DNA of 63,196 nt, counting the filler, from Reticulomyxa filosa (taxonomy: Eukaryota; Protista; Foraminifera): NCBI GenBank assembly GCA_000512085.1. It is 15 parts of 15 records of this genome, joined end to end, with 100 filler letters (N's around TTAATTAATTAA, not from the genome) between each part and the next. Parts side by side here need not be neighbours in the genome. Positions count along the whole stretch, not along the records: positions 2,581 to 26,303 come from ASPP01019678.1; 14 more parts are not named here. One strand, 5' to 3'. The translations under genes were made by a program, and so were the position numbers. Positions within the stretch are counted from its first letter, which is position 1, and the number at the start of each line of letters is the position of its first letter. Of this stretch, positions 3,685 through 24,565 are shown piece by piece. Under the pieces are notes generated by a model. The model did not search any database. It saw only the letters and a list, made by a program, of their open reading frames with translations, and was not told where the DNA came from.

Positions 3685-6171
3685 ATGTATAATGTGGAGG
3701 ATGAAAAGAATAAAGAGGAAGGAAAAGTGGGAATGGATTCTCTCTTGTTTCAACAGTCCTGTTTTGACAAAAACTGGATTTTACAATTCAATCAAGATGA
3801 ACAAATTAAATACTATGTTTGTTTGATTTGCCAACAAGTTGCAAACAACGCCATGGAATTAAATTGTCCTCAACACGAAAGTGTGGATGAATCATTGATA
3901 GTTGGAGAGAATTGTTTAAGACAGTATTTGAATGATAACAACAATGCTTGTCCTATTCAATCCCACGACAACTGTATATATTCCAAAAACAAGCAGTTAC
4001 AACGGCAGATTGGCGATTTGGTGGTGCCATGTCCACGGCAATTTCAGCAAGAATCTGGCATATCTAATGAAATTGAAGAAGGACAAACATCGGAAATGAT
4101 CAAATGCGATTTCAAAGGAAAGATCAAGGAAGTGGGTGATCATTTGGACAATGCATGTCCCTTAAAACTATTCAATTGTTGGTTTAAGCCATTTGGTTGC
4201 AATTACACCTGTCTCGGCCAAGATATGAATCCTCATATTGTTTCCACTTTGCAATTTCATTTTGATTTGATTATGAAAACTTTTGTGTCGATGCAACAAA
4301 CTATCCAACTTTCTCAAGTGCATTGCTTTGTCTTATGTTTGTTTTTTATGTGTGTCATACAAAAGAAAATCACAAAAACAACAAGGAAGAGGCAAGACAA
4401 TTGCGATCGGAAAATGAAAAATTGAAATTGGAAATTTCATTGAATTGTAGAAAAGCTCAAGAAATTTCAATACCAGCCAATGAAAATTCTGCTTTGCAAC
4501 AACATCAGCAAGCCTATGTGCCTCAGGTCTTTTTAGTTCGTGTTTTTGCTTTCCAACATTCAAAACATTGTATTCATTGATATGTAGAAAAAGTGTCAAA
4601 TTACAGTATAACAGCCAATAAAAATGGAATTGCACCTGAATGCACAATACATCTTTTAAAAAATGTGAAAAATTAAACAGCAATCTGCAATTATAGAAGT
4701 TGTTGAAAAATTGAAAAAAGATATTCAGAATAATTTTCAACAAATTCAAGCAAAAGACAACGAAATTACACAACTGAAGGAAGAAATTCTAAAGTATCAG
4801 CAAAATGCTAATACCAAAGACAAAGAACTTTTGGAGAAGGACAATCAAATAAAAAAAATTCAAAGAGATTCCCACCAAGAATCGCTCAAACTTCGTGCTG
4901 ATTTGGAAATAATGAAAAGGGATTTTGCCGAAAAGGAGAAACAACTGGTGACGCATCGTGAGCAATTGGTCCAATTGCCGCAAGAAAAAAATGGTGAAAC
5001 TACTAACAGTGATAATGAACAAAAAGATCAAGCTAATAAAGATCCCTCTTTTTCTTTTGATGAAACTAATTCCACAATTTCTTTTTGTGACCGTTTTCAC
5101 TCTGCCAAACAACTCAAAACTTTTGTGGGACATTCCACTTATGTGTGGAGTCTTCAATATGTGTCACTCGATGGGAAGCATTTTCTTTGTTCTGGATCAG
5201 GTGATAAAACAGTTCGTATGTGGGATGTAGAGACCACCAAACAAGTCAACATATTTAACGGACATTCAGGTTATGTGTATTGTGTAAAATTTTCACAATA
5301 TTATAATCGGAATCATCATCGTCCTATTATCTGTTCTGCGTCATATGACAAAACTATTCGATTTTGGGATTTTCAAACTTCCAAAGAAATTCACATTTTA
5401 ACAGGACATACTGGTCCGGTTTATGGCATACAATTGTCCTCATTCAATGATGGTCGATATTTGTGTTCTGGATCATTAGATAACACTATTCGTCTGTGGG
5501 ATGTTGAGACATGCAAAATGTTACATGTTTTCAGTGGGCATACAAATGGTGTCTGGTGTGTTGAGTTTTCATCATTTCAAAGTGGCAATACTCAAGATAA
5601 TAAAAATGTTATTGTTGGTATGCTTGGTGGTGCTGGATACACAATTTGCTCGGGGTCACATGATAATACTGTCCGTTTATGGGATGTAGAAACGGCCAAG
5701 GAATTAATCGTTTTCAAAGGGCATGAAGGTTATATAAATAGTATTAAATATTCACCATATGAAACGCTTGATGGTGGGCATACTATCTGCTCTGGTTCAA
5801 GTGATAAAACTGTTCGTTTATGGGATATTCGATCCAAAAAAGAAACTCATGTTCTCAAAGGCCATACAAATACTGTGTGGAGTATTGAATATGCGCCGTT
5901 AGAAAAAAATTACGGTGATGGAATTGATGGTGCGAACATAATATGTTCTGGATCGTATGATAACTCGATTCGATTTTGGGATGTTCGAACTAATAAACAA
6001 TTGCATGAAATCAAAGGAAATGATAATGATGGAGGAATATTTTCACTTCAATTTCTGCCATGTGAAGATAATGCACAGAGAAATGAAAAAGACAAACCCA
6101 GAGAAATTCAAATGTATGGTTATAATTTATGTAGTGGATCAAAAAATGGCATCATTCATTTATGGGGATAA
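3685..6171 (+). CDS. RING-variant / TRAF-type Zn finger - coiled coil - 7x WD40 protein (TRAF7-like architecture)
   Basis: Exons ~3685-4317, 4387-4526 and 4681-6171 with phase-0 GT-AG introns. N-terminal CLIC..CPQH..GENC..CP, then TRAF-like 'CDFKGKIKEVGDHLDNAC' and 'CWFKPFGC', a coiled coil, and repeated GH..V..SGS.DxT.R.WD. Confidence 0.85.
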
Positions 6172-8787: not shown

Positions 8788-9894
8788 TTAATTGGCTTCT
8801 TTTTGTTCCACATCGGACTCATTTTGGAACAGCAAGTCGAGCATTGTTGGAGAGCAAGCAGTATTGATAAAGACAGTAGAACAGCCATCGACCATTCTTA
8901 TTCCACGTCCACCATGACTATGTCCATAAATATGGAGAAATGGCCTGACTCGCTGAGTGACTTCTGTCAACAGAGCGCTGCTGCCAATATGTCCAGGTCT
9001 CTCTAAATCCCCAATGCCAAAAGGAGGCGAGTGGGTCACCAAAATGTTGGTCTCACTTGGAATACTTTCAAAAATTTTTTTGATTTCATCCAATGGTCTA
9101 TCAAACGCATGTGCCGAAAAAAGGCATCCTATTTTTGTAATTTTGTTACCCTCATTTCTTTCTATTCTCCTAAAGTAAAAAAAAAAAGAGAATTTTATTT
9201 TGCACAATTGTCAAATGACCTCGTTGAGGATGCCATGGTGATCCGTAGATATTAACTCCCAATACGGACAGCATTTCGTCTTGCAAATAGTGGGTATTAC
9301 AACTTTCCATAAAATATTTTTTATTTTTTTCCACGTCATTTTCGTTCAAACCCCGTTCATGGTTCCCCGCGATAATGACTTTGTGTCGGTATTGGCTCAA
9401 TGATTTCAACCACTCGACTACCTTGGGGATGTCTGTTCGCGACGTCCTCCAATTCGTCCAGTCACCTGCTATTATCAATATGTCGCCCTCGGGCATGTCG
9501 AATTTGTTATGATTCATATGACTGTCGGACACCGTTACAATTCGAATTGCTGTTTTAGTCGTTGTTTTTGGATTTGCATGCTTGTCCATTGACATTGGAG
9601 TGAGTGAAGAGCAAGAGGATTACGTTGTTTTAGCAAACAAAATTCAAATACACGTTATACAAATGGAGAAATAAAGCAAGACGATCCAATGCTTATTTGT
9701 AACATACATGAACGCCCTTGAGGATGAGACTGGTTGGAATCTATCTCACAGACTTGATAGCGTGTTGTCGCTGTTTCATGAGTGCTGGTCTTTAAATTTG
9801 ATTCATTCCTGTCTATTAAAGGCACCTTTTCGTCAGCCACAGGAACTGTGCAACAACAAGGACACCAATGAAAAGCACTAAGAGAACAACCCAT
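8788..9894 (-). CDS. Calcineurin-like metallophosphoesterase (MPPED/239FB-like)
   Basis: Motifs SDSH, AGDWT, AGNHE, YLQDE, YGSPW, LVTHSPP and GHSH. A probable first exon (ORF 9655-9894) begins MGCSLS; its join to the catalytic exons is less certain. Confidence 0.85.
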
Positions 9895-10320: not shown

Positions 10321-13300
10321 ATGGATACAACCGCAGGAGAACACATTTCATCTTTATCTTCACTTTCACCTACTCCAACCAAAAGTACGGCCATACTGTC
10401 CGAAAGTGGTGACGAGCCACTTAGTGCCAACGTAGTGGAAGTATACTTGCGCATTCGACCCAGCAGCGCCACTCAAAAGCCTGTTCATTTTTCTGTCTCG
10501 AATGACCACACTTGTATTGCAATTAAAAACGGTGGAGTTACGAATTTTTGCCCCTCTTTTCTATTCTTCTGTCGATAATTTTATAACACAACTCATATAG
10601 AAATCAGCCAATTTAAAGTTTACTCGCGTCTTTGACGATACCATGACAAACTCGCAAGTATCGTTTTGGATTTCATGATTAAAAATAATATTTTGTGTCA
10701 CACATAAAAGAAAATCATTTTTTTTCAATTGATGTATTATCATTGGCATGTCTTTTTTTTTTTGAAAGAACACACTCGCAATGGAAAAAAATTGTGCAAA
10801 AAATTTTTAAAATATTGTTATTAAGGTATTTGAATATTTTGCCCCTACTTTAGTGGATCGAATGCTGAAAGGATTCAATCATTTGGTGTTCACTTATGGC
10901 GTATCGAGAAGCGGCAAAACACATACAATAGTTGGAGAGAAAGGAGATCCCGGATTAGTGCAAAGGCTGGTAGAAAAACTCTTTACGATTGATTCAATCA
11001 CTAATCGCTCATATTTTGTACAAATTGCGTGTGCTGAAATTTATTGCGACAAATTGGGTGACCTATTGGCCCCAGAACATATTAATCAAGTATTTTTCTT
11101 TTTTCTTTTTTCTTTTTCTTTGTTTGTGTTTCTTTTAAAAAATGGTTTTTTGATTGGTTGTTTTTAGTGTATTGTCATTTTGATTGGTTTGAAACTATTA
11201 CAATTGATAGTAACACAACAACAAAAAGGAGATAGAATCACGCATAAAATCTGGAAATCCAGCAGCGCTGACAAAATATAGAATGGACAGTACCGTAAGG
11301 TTTGCAGAGCAAATGGACCAGGCTGCAAAACAGAGAAAATGGCTACAAACACAGCTCAATTTTGTTAGAACAAGCACATAAAAAAAACATTTACACATTG
11401 ATTTTATTTTTAATGATTTGCTGTTTGACAAATACACAATAGAATTCGAGTCGTAGTCACAATCTTTATTTCGTCGAAGTCGCGAGATGCGAGGATTCAC
11501 GAGTGATTGGTAAAGTATGTTTCTGTGACTTAGCCGGAGCCGATTGTGATGGACGAACGGAAAGTCCAATTGAACAGTACGAAGCCAAGTTCATTAGTTC
11601 GTCTTTGGTCTGTTTAAAGCAGCGCCTAATGCAGTCAAATGTAAACTGTGCCGAGTCTTCCACTTTCCAGGACTGTGCATTGACAAAGATATTGGAAGAG
11701 TATTTGACAGGGACTGGATTTGTTTCAATGATTGCAACTGCTGATTTTGGCCAGTTTCTAATATAAACAACCATACTTCGTATCTATCTCTTTTTTTTGT
11801 TTTAATCTCCTTCCTCTTTTTATGGTTTTTTTTATTGAATAATGTGTTTTTTATTTTCTCTTTGTTTTGTTCACTCAATCGACCTAAAAACATCCTCTTG
11901 TGAATGTTTTTGTTTACTGTAAAACGAAAGAGAAAATTTCGTTTCGTCGTTAGGTGCTTTGCATTTTGAAGATCAAAACATCCACAAATTTGCCGGTGCT
12001 CCAACAAAAGACTGTTGAGTCTGTTGCAATGCTTTGTTATGTTTTTTCAGGACGACATTTTATGACTGCATCTTTGTGTGTTTTTTTATTTGAAAAATAG
12101 ACAATGAAAACACAGAACAAGTCGTGAAGCCGTTATCCAATCAGGATGTGCCGTGGGAATTTTTTGACAAAGAAGCACTTTACAAAATTGCTGTGAGTGC
12201 TTGGACGTGTTGCAGGAACTTGGAGGTTGAAAATGAGGAAATTACTCAAGTTAGTTTTGTTTGACTTTGATAATACAAAATATAAACACAAAACATAAAA
12301 AAAAACGTAGCGTCACTCTGTTGCTATCCAGAAATTGGTATTGTCAAATAACCAACATCTTTCCAAATTGCGGCAAGAAATGATAGTTATTGAAACAAAC
12401 ATACGTTTTTTTGTTATCTCTCGTATTGAAATTGACATATTCAACCCGTTGTTTTTTGTAAACACAAGAATGAGAGAAATGAACTAATGATGAATCACTT
12501 TGAGGAGATCTTTGATTTGCAGTCAGAACATAACAAGTTGTTGCAGCTGCAATCTGAGAAAGTTGATTTTATTTGTCTTATTTTATTCTGTTAAGAGCGC
12601 ATCTATAACTGGTTAGCTTTGATGAAAACAGGTGCGGCAGCTTCAGAGCGAATCCAAAGCATTTGAAGAACAAGTGAAAAGGCGAGAAAAAGAGATATCG
12701 CAGAAAATGATAGAAATTGAAAAAAGTAGCCAGCATATTGAAAAATTAGTCCACGAAAACGAGCGTTTGTCCGACGAAGTGAAGCGTTTTAAAGCAAACC
12801 AGGTTGAAATTCAAAGCGAATGTCAATTACATATGAGAAAATTCCAACAACAAGAAACAAATGAAAAAAAATTTCATGAAAAATTCTTGCAAGCTCAAAG
12901 TGAAACTGCCACCGAAACTGAAAAGTGGCAAGTAAAATATGCCACCTTGGAACACCAGATTCACAATATAGGTTTGCATGTCTTTGTGTTTGGAATATAT
13001 TTTACCAGTGGCATTGACCTAAGGGAGAAGTGGTCTACACTCTGAACAAATAAACAAATCAATGTGGGCAATAAATGACATTCTTAACAGAAGAGCAGAG
13101 GAAACAGCAAATTGAGACCTTGGAAAAAAAGATAAAAATAACAACTGAAGAAAAGAATGTTCTTTGTCAGTCCATCGATTCAATTGTCGTTGAAAGGAAC
13201 GATTTTCGATCTAAGCTCGACGCGCTACGAGAAAAATATGAAAGTTTGAAAAGCATATGTCAAGGTTTGAACTCACAGGCGCAATGCTATCAACAACAAT

Positions 13301-15493
13301 TTGACGCTTGGGTATCTATACGTTTGTTTCTTTTCATTTTTTTTACCGTTCGTGTAATAAACATACTAATCAACATGGAAAAAATTCGACAGGCCAACGA
13401 AAAAATCGCTCTCGAGAAAAAATTAACTGAGTTCCATACACAAATTTGTGAAAAGGAGAATCTGATCAAACAACTAAATTCGAAATTAGCTGTATGTTAT
13501 TTGAAAATACGGACACTTTTCTTTATTTATTTTATTTTATTTTTTGCGATCACAGAAAAAAGACAAAGAGCAAGCCGAAAACATTACAAAATGGGATAAG
13601 TTAAAAAGTGAAGTCATGGTAATTCATGCCAACGTTTGTCAAGTCACGACTGAATTGAAAAATGAAAAGATAAAGCAATCTTTCGATATTCAGCAACTTA
13701 TTGCAAAAACATCACAAGTTAGTATGCTTCTCTTGTCTTCTTTTCGTTCAAAGTGTGTTATCCTTTTTGTTGTTGATCGAAGTTCTATAAACCGGGAGAG
13801 CTTAAGGCCATCAAAGAAGAAGTTTGGAAAACGGCTGTAGAACAAACGAAAGCATCTTTCAAATGCGAAAAGGAAGACCTAGAACGTAATCATCAAGAAA
13901 AAATCGAGGAACATCAAAATGTAATTAAAAAATTGAATGAAGAAATTCAGCAATTGAAATGCCTTCAAAATGCTACTTGTGATAATGTCCCTTCAGATGG
14001 TTTTTGGATTCACAAGGTACATATCAACAAATCTATTCTTTGCATCTTTTTTTGTACACATCATTGTATTAGTATTGGCTCATTATTTTCAAAAGGAAAA
14101 AAGAAAGCGTGAAGCAAGCGTAGAGTTGTTGCCGAATAAAAAGAAAAGGATGGTGGCCAAAATGCAGCGACAAAAGACGGCTTCATCTTTAGAAACTAAG
14201 AAAATCAATATAACTGAAGAAAAATGGTTTCCAAACAATGGTGACATTGTCAATACCATTGGCCGTCTCACAACACTTAACACAGAGATTTTAAGTAGTG
14301 ATATCGACAAACCATCCAACACATTAAAGAATCCTCCGATATCGCTCGATAGAAAACGTCAACCTACTAATTTGGATTGTGTTGCTCTTGGTATGAGACA
14401 ACAAGAAAAAAAAGAGTAGCAATATCTTGAACATTCGGACTCTTGATCACATTAACTCTGTTTTGTTGTTCCCTTACATTTAAGATATCTTGTCAACGGA
14501 CGAAGAAGATTCTGTAAAAGGAAATAAAAGAACAAATACAAGTATCTCCAGCAAAACGCAAATAATAATCCCTGATACACCCTTTATTCAAAGTAACTCG
14601 AAACATTCGAAAGATACAAGTATGCGACCTACATTGAGAAGAAGGGGTTTGACAACAAGTGACATCAAGAATGATGTTACGAATAAATTTATCAAGCACG
14701 AGAAAAATGACAAGGAAAAGAATACAACTGCTTATAATGAAAATTATCACAAAAATTCAATCAACCAAAGCACAAGTAGTGAAGCAGTTATTTGTTGGTG
14801 TGGAAAGCCGACAAGAGAAAGCAAAGGAAGAGTGTACTACAAAAAAGTGTGGATAAATGGAATCAAATACCGTCAATATGATAAATGTCAAATAAAATAC
14901 CCAGGGGATCAAATTTGGGTTAAGTAATAAAAATTAATTCATAAAAAAACGAGAAAATGTAAATCACTTTTAAACTGTATCACTTGTGTGTCACATGAGG
15001 AAATATTTAGCTGGCGAAGATTGTGGGAATGTTTGAAGAAAAAAAAAGTGGGAAAAAGTTTATGAAAAATTTATGGTATTGGGACCGAAGAGATTTGTTA
15101 AACAATGGATTGAAGGAAACACAGTTACCAAAAGAATCATTTCCAAATGAAAGATTTGAATGCATGCAATCAAATACAGATATCAATCCCTTAAGTTTGA
15201 TTGAAGCAAAAGTGACCATTTTACATAAATCGCAGCTGCCTCCAAATTTTACTATTAATGGAAAACATCCTGTTTATTTTACAAGATATTTTTTTGATCT
15301 GGCTACTCACGAGATCGTACCACAAACTGTTAATCTTTTACGTTTGTATTATTTCTTGTTTAGTTCGATCTACTACAGCCACTGTTTTCAATTGTCATAG
15401 TGTCCTGGTGATGATATCGGTTCCTCAGCATCTTCTTCAATGTCATGTGACGACATTGAAGGCAATGACAAAATCTTTAACGAACTACTTTGA
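10321..15493 (+). CDS. Divergent kinesin (kinesin-6-like motor) - long coiled coil - basic NLS - C-terminal BAH domain; multi-exon gene
   Basis: Motor motifs EVYLRIRP, FTRVF, TYGVSRSGKT, EIY..DLL, NSSRSH, FCDLAGAD and LTKIL. All introns through the coiled coil and BAH exons can be placed as phase-consistent GT-AG; stop TGA at 15491-15493. Confidence 0.8.
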
Positions 15494-16413: not shown

Positions 16414-19400
16414 ATGAAACATCTATGGCTTGGGCTTATAATCTTATTATGGTTAAACAAAATTGGAAGTGCGCTTGGGACAGTAGTGACTGAATGCAGA
16501 AAACAACAAGAGTGCGAAAACCAAATATTAACTTGTACAGGCGCCAAAAAATGTGAGTTAATGTGTTTAGATTATCGCAGTTGTCACAACGTGTACTACC
16601 GAATACTCGATCCGGACGTTGAACAAGTTGTCGTCCAGTTAGCCGGAGAGTCAAGTGGAGAAAGTATGATCATTGACTCTTCAAATAGTACAAGAAATAG
16701 ACGGGTCATTCAAATAATGAGCAGTAATATTAGTGCTGCCAAAGCACTCCGTGTATTTGGGCAAAGAAATGATCTGATCGAACTGCAGTGTTTGACAGAA
16801 AACAGCTGTGAGGAAAATCAAATTCACGCCATCAAAAGTAAATCCTTGGCGATTGATTGTATTAGCAATAACTCATGCAATAATATTAAAATGTACTGTT
16901 CGTCAATACTTCCTGATTATAATCACAACGGTGAGTGTCGTATTCAATGCCATGACACGCTTAGTGGCGATCATAGCTGCCAAGTTAAATTGCTTACATT
17001 TTCTGTGTCCTTCACAATTAAAAAAGCAACCATGTTTTGCACAACTAATCGTAGGATATCGAAATATGGACGCGTCATTCGTCACAAGTGAAGATGACCT
17101 GTAATAACAGACATTTGTGTCCTCGCGCAATAATGGTTCGATGGAGGGAGAGTATACGTCGTTTTAAAAAAAAAATTTTGTAATTTAAAATAAACCCAAA
17201 AAAATTCAGATATCTAAAAAATCTAAGTAAAAACTATTGCGTGCAAAACAGCATTATGGGAAAAAATATGAAATAAACTGTACGTATGAACCTACCCTTT
17301 CGAGTGGTTGGAAGTGTCCCTTGCATGAAGAACTGAAAAGTGTGCTTGATGTAATTGGTAAGTAACTTTCGTGAATAAAAGTGCAGGGAGTGAATAAGTG
17401 GTAAATGTTTTTTTTGTAAAAAAAAAAGAAACCAACAACAAATTAAATCCATGGAAAAGTAATTTGGACGAAGTTCCTGAAACAAAAGTAATGTATTGCA
17501 ATACAACAAACGGAGAATGTGTTTGCACTGGCGACCAAAGGTGCATTTCATTTTTTTTTTTTTAAGTATACGTCCAAAAATATACCGTTCAAAAATTATT
17601 TGCTGGACATTTACTGATACCTAAAGTATATTGAAAAAGGGGCTTAATACGAAACAAAAAAAAAGCAGTTTGCACGTATATGTGTGTACAAATATGGGGG
17701 AATGGAAAATAGTTGTTATAGATATAGACTAATTTGTAAAGCTCCACATTGTAGTGTGCATTGTGCCGGAATGTCAGCCTGCGAAGAAACGATAGTAGAT
17801 GCGTCGAGTGTAGATCTAGAATCGCTGAAAGTGAAAATAGAAGGGGTTCGAGGTGGGGCCAAGATGCGAATCATTGGGTACGAAATGAACTTTACGGAAA
17901 GTAGACTGCAAAGTTCATTGCAGCGATTGAAAAATGGAAAACTGTTGTACATGGAAGTCAAAGTGAGTGGAGATCAAGGATTTGTGGAAGGTCAGATTTA
18001 TGCTGCTCACGGAACAAAAGTGCAAGTACAATGTGATGGGAGCTGGTCGTGTGCATGGAGTGAATTCCTTGTTTCCAATGCTCAGTCATTGCAAGTGCAA
18101 TGTACCAGTGCCAATGATGAAAACAACAGCACTACAAGCCATGCATTGCAATCACAAAAGAGCCACTGTTTGGAACGTGCAGTCGTGTACTGTCCAGTGA
18201 GTGCTGCTCTAGATCGTCGTCCGGAACAATGCATAGTTGATTGCGGACATGGTCAACACAATTGCAAAGCAATGAAGCTATTTCATATCGGAGGAGTGGA
18301 TGGAATGCATTTGAACTGCAAGTCCACGCTGCATTCGAGTCTGTGTGAAGAGATGCACGTATATTGTGGATTGGGTTTGGAACGCCATTGCATTATGGAC
18401 AAGACGTTGTCGAATGAGTTTGCTTCTAATGAATGTTCGATTTGTAGCTACATGGCGGACCTCCCCATCCAAGTCTCCAGTGGCAATTATTGGATTGCAG
18501 ATTACCCTTACAAGTACCGGAACAAAGTGATCAGTTGCGACCCGATCTTGGGCGGAGACTCGTGCGTTATTGTGAGCGGAACCCTGTCGTACGTGAAAAT
18601 GTCCAGAGCAGATGCGGAGCGATCCATTATTGTCCCGAATGATATCTCCAAAGTCTGGATTTATGGTCACTCGGAATACTCGTTTGCGCATTCCATAATC
18701 AACCCCGATCTCACCTCAAACACCAGCGAACTGCATCTGTTTTCCGTTCACAAGCACTCTATCTTTCAAAGTGCACAAATCTTTGTACCTTTGCAGTTGC
18801 TCGAGTTGCAATGCCATACCCTTGCATCGTGCTCCAACTCAGTCGTCTTTACGTCTCGGCGCCACTTGCAGACTTGGCCTCATGTCCACATTGCATGCAC
18901 AGCTCCATCCTCGTGCTCCAACAGTCTTTGGCACTTGCACTACACACCGCAACTACATACCAATATCACTTGCTTTCAATCGCATAATGCATGTAAACAC
19001 ACGATATTGCATGTTGGTTTATTGAACGACCTGGGATTGCCCTCAACGTCCATAGATCCAATGTCGTCGGCCAATTTGACATGCGTTGACAATGCATCTT
19101 TGTCTCCAATGCCGTGCAAATACATAAAGATACAGCGGCATATACTTCGTCGCTTGCTGCAGTTTCCTACATTCCCTCCTACAGTCAGTCCGACAAAGTC
19201 ACCGACAAAGCCACCGACGACAAAATCACCGACGACAAAGCCACCGACGACAAAGTCACCATCTAGGCATCCAACTAAGCGACCAACTAAGCAACCAACT
19301 AAGCAGCCAACTAAGCAACCAACGCAATTACCAACAATCGCTCCAACTACGCCGACAAAGAGTCCAACAAATAGTCCAACCATACCGACAAAGAATCCAA

Positions 19401-22400
19401 CAAAGAGCCCAACCATACCGACAAAGAGCCCAACAAAGAATCCAACCACACCGACGGTGGCCCCGACAATGGAGCCCACCAAACGCCCATCAAAACATCC
19501 AACCCAATATCCAACGATCAATCCAAGCAGATTCCCAAGTGTTCCTCCCACCCGATTTCCGACGCCTCGTCCAAGCAAATTCCCAAGTATTCCTCCCACC
19601 CAACATCCAACGATCAGTCCAAGTGTTCCTCCCACCCGATATCCAACGATCAGTCCGAGCCGTCATCCCAGTAGCTCCCCGACCATTCATCCGACCAGGC
19701 ACCCAACCAGGCATCCAACCAGGCATCCAACCAAGAGTCCGACCAAACTCCCAAGCAACTTTCCGACACCATATCCGAGCAAGCGACCGACGGTAGTTCC
19801 GAGTCACTTTCCGACAAAGATTCCGACAAAGATTCCAACAAAGAATCCGACAAAGATTCCAACAAAGAATCCGACAAAGAATCCCACAAAGAATCCCACA
19901 AAGAATCCTACAAAGAATCCTACCACAAAGAATCCCACCACAAAGAATCCCACAAAGAAACCGACAGTTAATCCTACCACAAAGAATCCTACAATAAACC
20001 CCACGAAGAATCCAACAAAAATTCCAACGCAATATCCGACAACAACGGCCATACCAACCACGACAACCGTAACACCGAGGCCAAGTACGTATCCAACACA
20101 GGCGCCCCAAAGGAAGCCTACGAAAACTCCGACGAAGCCCCCGACCACGGCAAAGCCGACATACAGACCCACGTTCCCTCCGGACGTGCTGACAGTGTCA
20201 TTGAGCATTCCCGTGTCCAACTCGGACAATACGGTGAATCCGAACGTGCGATTCCAGATGACATCGACCATCGACTTTGTGAGCGGGAGCAAGAACTATA
20301 GCATCATATCTTCGGCGAACGTAAAGAGTTTCTGGAAGCTGTATGACATGGCAGCGAACGTGCAATACAACCTGTCAACCAGTTACTCTACCTTGTCTAA
20401 TACATATGACTTTGTGTCTTCGCGTCAATCGGCCGCGCTTGTGCAAAGTACCAATGGCAGCACGACCTCTTACCACGTCGTAGACGCATTTGTGTTCAAC
20501 TCTAAGTTTGGATATGCGCAATCCAGTCTCTATACTATGGATATTTGCAACAAGGGAGGCGGCCTTCTGCTCGCGGGCCGTAGATACAGACTGTCGGTGC
20601 TTGCAGTCGTGTCGTATCACGATAGTCGAGGGAACCAAAATGTGTCGTCCACCCAATACTTGTATTTCCAAGTCAACTCGCCGCCAAACAACGGTACGTT
20701 CCGCAATGCCACGTGTTCGATCACTCCGACGCAGGGTAACGCGTTCACAGAGACCTTCACCATGTTTTGCACAAACGAGTGGACAGACGACACAAGCAGC
20801 GTCTTGTATTTCAACTTTGTCATGAACAGTGTGTTCGTATCGTCGTATTACACTTTCAACACAACCACCAAGACTGGGTCATCCTCCAATGACAACAACA
20901 ATAATAATGGTATTTATTACAATTCGATAAGTCATACTATTACGTACTCCACCACATTGTCCACGGACGTGAGCGAAGTGATTGCAATCATTATCGACAA
21001 CTACGCGGCGGCCACATGCATTCACATCCCCGTGACTGTGTTGGAAGGAAAAGCGTTCCAAAACACGACCCCGTCCAACTTTTTTAATGTTTCATCTCCG
21101 CAGTCGTCGATTGTGGGCTCGTTGCTGTTGGGCAGCTCCAATACGACAGTCGACCTGAACAACGCCAGCGAGGTGAAGGGACTGTTGAACACCGAACTGT
21201 ACGTGAACGGTACACTGGACTCGACCAAGGTCGTCCAAGTGATCTCCAATCTGACCAAGACCTCTTCCGCCTACACCTCATACGTCAACCAGCTATCCTC
21301 CGTGTCCCTCACCGATGTCCCCGTCATCGTCAACTTCTCCTACTCCGTCGTGAATTACGCGCTGGTCCTCGTCAATACTCTGCAGCCACAGAACTTGGAC
21401 AGCGTGTCGCAGGCCTTGACAGTGCTATCCTCGGCCACCCAAGGCATAGGTAGTATCTGCTCTGGCAGTCTTGCGGCCAGCAACGTGTCTTCCGCCGCGT
21501 CCAGAGCGGCATCTGCTCCAGAACACGTATCTCTGGCCAATCAAGTATTGAACACGACACAGAAACTCGTGTCCTCGGCGTCCACGCTATTGGTCTCATC
21601 GTCTTCCCAAGCGTCTCTCGACAAGACCACGGCGGTGAATGGACTGACGAGCATTGGCAATGTGCTCAACAACATTGCCTGTTCCACACAAGGAGCAACC
21701 GGAGACAATATCGGCGGTGGTGGTATTGTTGCTAATAAGTCCACCACTGGTAAAACCTTTTTGAACACGGCTCAACACATTGGTCAATTGGCATCCATCG
21801 ACTTGGTCATTGGTGAACGCGTCGAGGTAACCACGCCCGTACTCAATGTCACCGTGTCTCGTGTGTCAACTTCCACTTCTGTGACGAGTAGCAGCTCGTC
21901 CTCTTCCAATAACAAATACTCGACCAAATTGTCCACGAAAGCGACGACGGATGCAGAAGGCGGTGATTCCGAAACTATGGATACGTACCCATCCACAGCT
22001 TGTAGCGATACCGTGTCGTTGCCCGATTCCGCGTTTTCGCCATACGGAAACTATTCCTCCAAAGTAGATTGCGCCGTGGTGAGTTCCAATGTCGACCCTT
22101 ATAATCCGGGACAAGAACAAGTTAATGGATTCACAGGTATTGTCGTCAGCGTGAATGTGAGCGTCCCTTTGACAACGGCAGCTGCATACGGCGGAAACGT
22201 CCGTGTCGACTCTTACGCCGCCGAGACTTTTCCGCAGAAATGCAACCCTGTCATTATCCAAATCCAAAATAAACCCTGGGCGAATTACACGGATACGGAG
22301 GTATCGTATCCCTCGTGCGTGTATTACAATACGACACAGACCCAATGGCACGACTATGGCTGCTATGTGTGGGATCGCAACACCAGTGACAACAGTGTCG

Positions 22401-24565
22401 TTTGCGTATGCAATCACACCACTACATTCAGCTTGAAGAAGAGCACGTTCAAACCCAATATCAATTACGTAAAACTAAATTCGTTCCGCGTCATCACCAT
22501 TTCCAATTTGGCCAAGTATCCTGCTGGTTGGATCCTCGTATTGGTCGCCATTACTGTCTTTGCCATACTGCTGTATGTCGCTCCGGATGTCAATGACAAG
22601 CCTTTGATCGCTCACAGTCGAGGCGTGTGGAAAAGCTTTCGAGATGCCAATTGGTACGACTTTCGAGTTGGCATGGAAGCCAATATCTTGTGCAGCCAAG
22701 ATGTGTGGTGGTGGAAGATCATGCGACTCTGGTATATCGCTATTCGCTGTGACCATATGATCGTTGGATTGTTCTTCCGCTACAAAGGCACGGGATATCG
22801 TCGTCAAGCTCGGCTATTTGCGTTTTTGGCCAAGCTGTTCACCTTAACCGCCGCCAATGGTCTCTTCTATGGAAATCCAACCAATCCTTGGGGAAACGAT
22901 TGGATCATTTCCCTTTACGCATCGCTCATTCAAATGCCTTTGGTTTTCGTCAAGTTTTGTTTCAAGCGTTACCAGTCCAAGGAAAAAATGGACAAAGAAG
23001 AATTCAATGTCCAGCTGCGTGCCACGGTTACCTTTTTCTTCTTCATGCATGTCTTTGTCGTTGTTTATTGTTATTATTATTGTTTGTTGTATATATAATA
23101 GCTCGAATTGTTAAAAGCCATTGAAGTTATGTTGCATTAACACTGCTACTGTATATTGGAAGGAAGAACAATGGATGACATTTTGAACAATACCAAAAAA
23201 ATTTAAAAAATTTATGCTTTGTTTTTTTTTTTTTTCTCTTATCTTTTTTTCTTTCTCAAAATTGTTAGTTACAACAACTCGAGTATGGCAGGATAACGAG
23301 AGGTGAAACAACACTGGACAATGGAGAAAAAGGAGAGAAGCCAACGACAGAAACAAAGAGCGAAGAGAAAACAGACACGTTGTGGAATGAAACAAAGTCG
23401 GGCTCAAGTGAGGCAGTACACATGCAAGGGGATATAGAGATGATTACAACAGGAGATGATTTGAATAAACAACCGGTTTCTGCCACTGATGACGAGGCAA
23501 AGGTAACAGTAAAAACGTCGACATCACTGAAAACATCGAAAACACCGAAAACAAAACATTGGAATCCGCGGGACTTTGAAATGATGAACATTGACACACT
23601 GACAAGGATCCTCGAGACTTCTGCGGATATCAACAATGCCAATGCGACCACATCTCCAAACGACAATGCCCAAGATACAGCAGATACCAAATTTGCGCAA
23701 GAGTTGATTGTTTCTGCAGAGCAAAAGTACCTGGCAACTGCTGCATTACGTCGCAAAATTATGGACCAACAATATTCTTGGTGGCACTGGTGCAAGTATG
23801 TGGCATGGGCATTCACTATCTCATGGACTCTCATTTGTGCTATCGTCACTTTAATTTTTGTCATTCGCTTTGATATGCTGCGAAGTGCTAAAAATGGATA
23901 TGAGTCTGCTGTGATCAGCCAATGTCCAAATGGTATTGACATTACAGATATGAACACAATTCAGTACGATGAAACTGAAAAATCTATGGCCGATTATGTA
24001 ACGAAAGTTTCGACATCCACCTTAAATACAGATAACGGATTTGAATTTGGACAATCCGTAGACCGTTGGCTTATGTCCATTTTCATTGGCTTTTTGTTAT
24101 CGCTCTTTGTTTGGCAGCCCTTGTTCGATTTGATTTTACAGGCTATTAAAGTACTTCGATTTGATGTTGAGTGCAAGACTAATCTGTATTTGAAAAAAAA
24201 AAAATAATAAGAACAATCGTAGACAAATACAATTTTGTGTGTATGTAATCAAAAAGCCGAAAGCAGTAAATGAAATATATTTCTTTGCCAATACAAAATT
24301 GTTATTGACACTGGCCGAAAGGAATATCCTAGCCCAAGCAGGCGCCGATATAGAGTCAGATAACGATGTGGACAGCGGATCTGCGGATGAAAACGATGAT
24401 GCGGATTCTCAATCAATAAAAGAACACAAGGAAGAAGAAAATGTAAAATCAGAAATTAAAAATAGGACTAGCAGAATCCTCACCGTGATGAATGAAGTAG
24501 AAAAGAGAGAGTTTATGGAAATGTTGGGCTCTGATATGGATTTGTTACAACAAAACAACCCATAA
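16414..24565 (+). CDS. Polycystin-1/PKDREJ-like surface receptor: signal peptide, Cys-rich repeats, PT-rich stalk, REJ-like region, GAIN/GPS, 5 TM
   Basis: Signal peptide MKHLWLGLIILLW; REJ-like NSPPNNGT..CSITPTQG...F...C..WTDD; GPS CVYY...W...GC...VCVCNHTTTF; PKD1-like H....FFR....RQARL......NGLFYG and WWHWCKYVAW...WLMS..FLLSLFVWQP. Late exons 23269-~24165 and ~24257-24565 join in phase. The join of the first exons (16414-~17540) to the 17669 exon is less certain. Confidence 0.75.
19170..20175 (+). repeat. Coding tandem PTxx repeats (PTKN/PTKS/PTRH), mucin-like stalk
   Basis: Degenerate 12-bp units such as CCNACAAAGAAT inside ORF 17684-23098. Confidence 0.9.

Follow-up and report, generated by a model that had tools for sequence, protein, structure and literature searches.

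The genome of Reticulomyxa filosa, a freshwater foraminifer and amoeboid protist, very probably contains a single protein-coding gene that runs from a kinesin motor domain to a C-terminal BAH domain. This kinesin-BAH gene occupies positions 10321–15493 on the plus strand of the DNA analyzed here (63,196 nucleotides (nt), referred to as the window, along which all coordinates are counted unless another locus is named). It lies on contig ASPP01019678.1 (window 2581–26303; 23,723 bp; assembly GCA_000512085.1), which is AT-rich (~33% GC) and whose genes have short GT-AG introns. The best explanation of our results, to which we assign a probability of about 0.6, is that this one gene encodes a nuclear, chromokinesin-like motor in which a kinesin, a nuclear localization signal (NLS) and a BAH domain are combined.

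Gene model and conservation among paralogs

The exon model was built from reading frames, splice sites and paralog conservation, and the exons were checked singly. It comprises 18 exons with 1185 codons plus a stop, beginning with an ATG at 10321 and ending with a stop codon at 15491–15493, which are exactly the limits given in the original prediction for this locus. All 17 introns are GT-AG introns of 64–177 nt with compatible phases, and internal stops were found in none of the 18 exons. The motor exons are E1 (10321–10536), E2 (10601–10657), E3 (10826–11089), E4 (11229–11363), E5 (11443–11753), and E6 (11931–12013). The stalk exons are E7 (12101–12249), E8 (12332–12385), E9 (12469–12561), E10 (12632–12971), E11 (13091–13311), E12 (13393–13491), E13 (13556–13717), and E14 (13783–14016), and the NLS, linker, BAH domain, and tail are encoded by E15 (14096–14390), E16 (14485–14918), E17 (15011–15328), and E18 (15401–15493). 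The prediction had proposed that the exons could be spliced in phase from the motor through a coiled coil and a basic stretch into the BAH domain; the 18-exon model is phase-consistent along this path, and every peptide string quoted in the prediction was present at its place on the plus strand.

Three further R. filosa loci, L001 (RFI_11664), L002, and L005 (RFI_18265), were collinear with the window gene exon by exon, and the order of motor, stalk, NLS, SAP-like region, and BAH domain was the same in all four loci. All six motor exons were collinear with L001 and L005. From the reading frames, splice sites and this conservation, we infer that the 18 exons are spliced into one mRNA in R. filosa.

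Individual borders of the model were also considered. At the E15/E16 junction, the donor (G/GTATGA, the slash marking the cut) and the acceptor (TTTAAG/) are both in phase 1 and form a joint codon GAT, and the phase 0 intron at 15329–15400 takes out an in-frame stop. An alternative acceptor of E14, at 13807, is likewise in frame. A different pair of E7/E8 borders (donor 12193, acceptor 12311) was rejected as wrong, since conservation with L001 runs on to NEEITQ; the public proteins of the window locus (P0005) and of L001 (P0001) join at Q/KLVLS, the E7/E8 junction of our model.

With a background stop frequency of 0.052 per codon, chance alone would leave the 45 codons of E16 5' of its first ATG open with P ~0.09, and the 49 codons of E7, which include no ATG, with P ~0.07. 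Taken alone, these figures are only suggestive, but the two open stretches carry more weight because both are conserved at the protein level in paralogs. The opening residues of E16, which precede any ATG, are conserved, reading DILSTDEED in the window and DLLSTDEEG in L001.

One gene versus the public annotation

The public record splits the locus into a kinesin gene of 256 amino acids (aa) at 10321–11442 and RFI_22477 (P0005; 848 aa; 12029–15400), which contains the stalk plus the BAH domain and corresponds to the C-terminal two-thirds of the kinesin-BAH gene. Taken at face value, these models describe at least two separate genes, a kinesin followed by an independent coiled-coil/BAH gene, and the in-phase splices would be coincidental. 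There are also two public models in L001, and a SAP+BAH protein of 307 aa (P0002) was called in L002 as a stand-alone open reading frame (ORF) with its own ATG, both of which speak for separate genes. We nevertheless consider this arrangement improbable. The public models leave 11443–12028 outside any gene, although this interval contains E5, with switch I, switch II and a Pfam Kinesin match, as well as E6. The public split is untenable because half of the motor domain falls in the supposed intergenic gap between 11442 and 12029. If the kinesin gene ended at the stop after E6 (12016–12018), only about 10 nt would be left before the public ATG at 12029. The 16-aa start exon of the public RFI_22477 model has no counterpart in the paralogs. 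E7, which offers no ATG, is conserved in L001 upstream of the public start.

Comparison with L002 bears directly on this boundary. Homologues of window E6 and of the first E7 residues are contiguous there in one exon (ENSDIVVKPMVN versus ENTEQVVKPLSN), and for both the E6 and the E7 match no more than 2 of 1000 shuffles reached the score. Since this single exon spans both sides, the sequence flanking the public gene boundary should be one coding sequence. L005 was rejected as further single-exon evidence of this kind: its frame is open, but the E6 similarity was not significant (z 0.6). The SAP-BAH ORF of L002 is in frame with the preceding NLS exon, and the one stop between them lies inside intron-like sequence. 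The preservation of the motor-stalk-NLS-SAP-BAH order in four diverged loci also argues against separate genes. Moreover, RFI_22477 itself already joins the stalk to the BAH domain through the E15/E16 junction derived here (CVAL-D-ILSTDEED), and RFI_11664 joins them too. The two-gene split in the public record looks like an artefact.

In the public proteins P0005 and P0001, several short introns are kept in frame, E9 is left out, and the last exon is missing; the R. filosa gene models of this family need re-annotation. UniRef names both RFI_22477 and RFI_11664 'BAH domain-containing protein'. Because the public models lack the motor, and motor and BAH domain are filed separately, the link between kinesin and BAH has been hidden in the databases. 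For at least four R. filosa loci, at which motor and BAH domain are recorded as unrelated proteins, the public annotation is thereby corrected.

Kinesin motor and coiled-coil stalk

The kinesin motor domain spans 10321–12013 (E1–E6). The Pfam Kinesin family (PF00225; cut-off 29.3 bits) matched E3 with 75.5 bits (E 5e-21) and E5 with 53.1 bits (E 3e-14), covering profile positions 57–146 and 198–303 of 327, and PDB kinesins matched the same two exons. The motor is thus a kinesin, as had been predicted. In the translation of E3, the P-loop GVSRSGKT (10898–10921) fits the pattern GxxxxGKT, and in that of E5, switch I is NSSRSH (11443–11460), which contains the canonical SSRSH; switch II lies at 11527–11544. 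When E3 alone was compared with PDB sequences, kinesin-8, -1, -3, and -2 gave near-equal scores, family placement here being from single-exon searches. By homology the window copy is still a kinesin, with putative motor activity, but its catalytic competence is uncertain.

E7 begins with a neck-linker-like segment, VVKPLSNQD (12121–12147), which we take to resemble the kinesin neck-linker consensus. Its L002 homologue, IVVKPMVN, shares its exon with the end of the motor. The stalk that follows (12101–14016, E7–E14) gave weak Pfam matches, all of them to coiled-coil families, and is collinear in L001, L002, and L005. This stalk, roughly 600 aa of coiled coil, is presumably the dimerisation region.

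Putative nuclear localization signal, SAP-like region and acidic tail

E15 carries at its start (14096–14149) the sequence EKRKREASVELLPNKKKR, which fits the bipartite NLS pattern. Its counterpart in L001 is EKRTRERSVELLPNPKKRR, and the motif is also conserved in L002, in L005, and in L004, a 1.8-kb environmental contig from JGI sample 3300030740. The basic NLS-like stretch noted in the prediction was therefore found to fit a bipartite NLS and to be kept in every relative, and the kinesin-BAH protein would be expected in the nucleus.

E16 encodes an acidic, Ser-rich linker, an eroded SAP-like stretch (14574–14699), and the N-terminal part of the BAH domain (14790–14918). The SAP family (PF02037; cut-off 23.9 bits) scored above its cut-off in P0002 (35.9 bits), L005 (38.2 bits), and L004 (31.6 bits). 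A SAP domain precedes the BAH domain in L002, L005, L004, and the further relative L003; it is below detection in the window copy and in L001. Because the domain is Pfam-significant in P0002, L005, and L004, yet undetected in the window, SAP looks ancestral to the kinesin-BAH family and eroded in the window copy. The conserved NLS-like stretch and the SAP domain of the paralogs, which lies just before the BAH domain, fit a reading in which the protein acts on chromatin.

The last exon, E18, encodes an acidic, Ser-rich C-terminal tail (CPGDDIGSSASSS...) plus the stop. It is absent from the public model and is conserved, with 92% over 13 aa in L005 and a visible counterpart in L001.

A BAH domain related to DNMT1 BAH1

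The larger, C-terminal part of the tail domain is encoded by E17 (15011–15328). Both the family-profile search and the predicted fold support the tail domain as a BAH domain that is closest to DNMT1 BAH1. Searched against PDB sequences, the family profile matched DNMT1 BAH1 (7LMK; E 2.3e-8), the BAH domain of rice ASI1 (E 1.4e-6), and ZMET2 (E 1.4e-4), and matches without a BAH name were absent from this search. AlphaFold models of the paralog domain and of the window protein domain (P0005:672–828) had predicted local distance difference test (pLDDT) values of 79.9 and 72.2, respectively. When the two models were compared with the PDB using Foldseek, the 50 top matches of each were all BAH domains, the best being DNMT1 BAH1 (E about 1e-7; TM 0.56–0.59). 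The BAH tail of the original prediction thus stands on the family profile, the AlphaFold and Foldseek results, and a sub-threshold Pfam match; the expected Pfam hit itself did not reach the cut-off in the window copy.

In DNMT1 BAH1, the H4K20me3 pocket is formed by Y772, W793, D799, and E816 (PMC9329655). In the family-profile alignment, the Trp encoded by the last codon of E16 (14916–14918) aligned to Y772, and a Trp (15074–15076) and an Asp (15092–15094), both invariant in the family, aligned to W793 and D799, the Asp being six residues after the Trp as in DNMT1. L001 has an Arg at the position of the first pocket Trp. A DNMT1-type histone pocket may be retained in the window BAH domain, and methyl-lysine is a possible ligand, since equivalents exist for three of the four pocket residues of DNMT1 BAH1. 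Judging from its domains, the kinesin-BAH protein might bind chromatin.

Divergence of the family, environmental relatives and rarity

The best-preserved of the four R. filosa copies are the window copy and L002. Switch II reads DLAGAE in L002, DLAGAN in L001, and DLADGS in L005. L001 (1552–6330 of that locus) has NSDSSH at switch I, and its switch I Arg and switch II Glu are lost. L005 (1098–6162 of that locus) has GVSGSCKT and NDSHN, with an altered P-loop and with degenerate switches I and II. In the L002 motor, the loop that follows switch II is enlarged by a long insertion rich in Ser and Thr. The BAH domain of L002 (2885–3808 of that locus) lacks the intron that splits the BAH domain in the window, L001, and L005, a difference that, judged from the sequences, is an intron loss or gain within the family.

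Such divergence raises the question of whether the window gene is itself decaying, as one copy in an expanded kinesin family that has become a pseudogene, either without function or hardly expressed. The R. filosa genome has been reported to hold many kinesin genes, and foraminifera are noted for their large kinesin repertoire (PMC13746701). This background, the presence of at least four diverged copies in R. filosa, two of them with degenerate catalytic motifs, and the erosion of SAP in the window copy are compatible with a pseudogene. However, the 18 exons are all intact, with canonical splice sites and with neither a frameshift nor an internal stop, and conservation extends to the P-loop, switch I, NLS, BAH core, and C-terminal tail, so that a pseudogene is very improbable here.

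The environmental contig L004 contains no introns. A single ORF in it encodes a coiled coil resembling E11–E13, the NLS, the Pfam-significant SAP domain, and the start of the BAH domain, and the rest of the BAH domain follows after a single frameshift. L004 looks like a transcript of a kinesin-BAH relative. Its frameshift is a +1 shift inside the BAH domain (1233–1285 of that contig); L003 contains several frameshifts near homopolymer runs. The shifts in both contigs may stem from misassembly or be genuine defects.

Relatives of the domain were rare in the databases. An exhaustive HMMER search of 1.84 billion representative proteins with the BAH exon returned four matches, of which two were from R. 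filosa and two were short environmental fragments, and a word search added RFI_22477, the public model of the window locus itself. A word search with the stalk (P0005:17–400) added one more paralog, from R. filosa, and gave no motor-stalk ORF of environmental origin. Scans of a metagenome contig collection that does not include L003 or L004, made with the BAH alignment and with the L004 ORF, yielded no confirmed match. The prediction had named no known kinesin-BAH architecture, and our literature search likewise yielded no report of a kinesin that carries a BAH or SAP domain.

Proposed function

In animals and plants, chromokinesins hold chromosomes by means of a DNA-binding tail. The protein encoded in the window would have a comparable order, consisting of a divergent kinesin motor with a neck-linker-like segment, a stalk, a bipartite NLS, an acidic linker with a SAP remnant, a DNMT1-BAH1-like BAH domain, and an acidic tail. 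We propose that the NLS would import the protein into the nucleus, where the BAH domain, ancestrally together with SAP, would hold nucleosomes, DNA or a histone tail, possibly through methyl-lysine. The dimeric motor heads would bind spindle microtubules, and the protein would then push or tether chromosome arms as an analogue of chromokinesins. Because mitosis in foraminifera is closed and takes place inside the nucleus, a protein with such a role would need an NLS.

Several observations weigh against this proposal. The splice junctions of the gene are all predicted, from sequence and comparison. In the motor, switch II reads DLAGAD where DLAGSE is canonical, so that the DxxGxE pattern is broken by an Asp at the position of the catalytic Glu. 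Loop 12 has the motif FQDCALT, differing from what we take to be the consensus, YRDSKLT. In its second half the motor has diverged strongly, E5 reaching no more than 30 bits with its best PDB match, a kinesin-13, and motility is therefore uncertain. The ATPase motifs are clearly degenerate in two paralogs, L001 and L005, which may be pseudo-motors or decaying copies, and the family may be decaying or changing its function. In the tail, the complete window BAH domain (P0005:672–828) scored 21.4 bits (E 2.4e-4) against Pfam BAH (PF01426), below the cut-off of 30.8 bits. E17 alone was likewise below it (19.9 bits, E 7e-4); the paralog domain (P0001:548–705) passed it with 31.7 bits. A Pfam search with the whole public protein P0005 matched no family, and BAH scored only once the domain was cut out. 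SAP had no match at E values up to 1 in window E16 or in P0005:560–700. The fourth pocket residue of DNMT1, E816, aligns to an Arg, with a Glu on both sides of it. Finally, L004 is taken as complementary DNA (cDNA) solely because it lacks introns.

The main rival explanation is a protein with the same one-gene architecture that does not act as a moving chromokinesin, either because its motor is a weak or rigor-like microtubule binder in the style of Drosophila NOD or because its BAH domain serves as a protein-protein or cargo adaptor in place of a histone reader; it would be a static tether or have a non-chromatin role. The altered switch II and loop 12, the poorly conserved C-terminal half of the motor, the loss of switch I and II residues in L001 and L005, together with the altered P-loop of the latter, the Arg in the pocket, and the eroded SAP are all in keeping with such a protein, and BAH domains also mediate protein-protein contacts (PMC9329655). 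On the other side, the window copy has a canonical P-loop and switch I, its W, W, and D pocket residues are spaced as in DNMT1, and the conserved NLS and the SAP domain of the relatives point to a nuclear, DNA-proximal role. On balance, we regard a static or non-histone role as possible, though unlikely, and favor a chromokinesin-like motor.

A more specific version of the chromokinesin-like role, in which the BAH tail, through a DNMT1-BAH1-like pocket, is a genuine methyl-lysine histone reader that recruits the kinesin to a repressive mark such as H4K20me or H3K9me, is doubtful on present evidence. If true, the protein would be a histone-mark-guided chromokinesin that evolved within Foraminifera independently of the animal and plant chromokinesins, and, as the first motor protein to do so, it would select its cargo by reading the histone code. 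More generally, a kinesin with a BAH histone-reader tail, and with SAP in its relatives, would represent an independent invention of the chromokinesin principle in Rhizaria. It would suggest that the handling of chromosomes or of the nucleus by microtubule motors can be coupled to chromatin state, and would provide an entry point into the unexplored mitosis of foraminifera.

Other genes on the contig

The kinesin-BAH gene has neighbors on both sides. Upstream, a two-exon gene for a calcineurin-like metallophosphoesterase (8788–9595, minus strand; Pfam Metallophos, E 3.3e-6) is transcribed away from the kinesin-BAH gene, with 725 nt between their start codons. Farther upstream, 3685–6171 (plus strand) encodes a TRAF-type zinc finger that did not reach the cut-off (E 7.7e-5), together with a coiled coil and a WD40 propeller of the seven-blade type; the public record has this gene as a protein of 766 aa. 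Downstream, 17684–23098 (plus strand), with 16414–17091 upstream of it, forms a single open frame of 1804 codons. This frame contains Cys-rich N-terminal modules and predicted membrane segments; in addition, Pfam PT matched a long, mucin-like PT-rich repeat in it (E 3.5e-18), and a GPS autoproteolysis motif scored E 2.3e-7. Its GC content is 45–55%, compared with about 33% in the rest of the contig, and it is split into two genes in the public record.

Comparison with known systems

In overall architecture, the kinesin-BAH protein resembles Kid/KIF22 (kinesin-10) and NOD, in which an N-terminal motor and a coiled coil are likewise joined to a nucleic-acid- or chromatin-binding module at the C terminus. 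These proteins are nuclear or associated with chromosome arms (PMC13581288; bioRxiv 10.1101/520460). Kid/KIF22 and NOD bind DNA through a helix-hairpin-helix domain in the tail rather than through BAH or SAP. The exon-wise PDB searches assigned the R. filosa motor neither to kinesin-10 nor to another kinesin family.

KIF4 (kinesin-4) likewise joins its motor to a long stalk, an NLS, and a chromatin- or DNA-binding region at the C terminus, and the founding paper on chromokinesin describes a DNA-binding, kinesin-like nuclear protein (PMC2120390). The KIF4 tail, however, is basic-leucine-zipper-like and Cys-rich, with no BAH domain reported, and its likeness to the R. filosa protein is one of architecture rather than of kinesin-4 sequence affinity.

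The SAP domain of the R. filosa paralogs and relatives, which there adjoins the BAH domain, is shared with SAF-A and NuSAP1, which link chromatin and microtubules; NuSAP1 has a SAP domain together with mitotic microtubule binding (PMC10650578). SAF-A and NuSAP1 have no motor domain, and in the window copy SAP is eroded below detection.

DNMT1 BAH1 (PDB 7LMK), a reader of H4K20me3, was the best match to the R. filosa BAH domain in both profile and fold, and an N-terminal strand motif, I-x-W-x-G...YYKKV, is common to both. Sequence identity between them is 17–24%; Y772, W793, and D799 of DNMT1 correspond to W, W, and D in R. filosa, and E816 corresponds to Arg. The DNMT1 domain lies inside a DNA methyltransferase, whereas the R. 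filosa domain is placed at the end of a motor protein.

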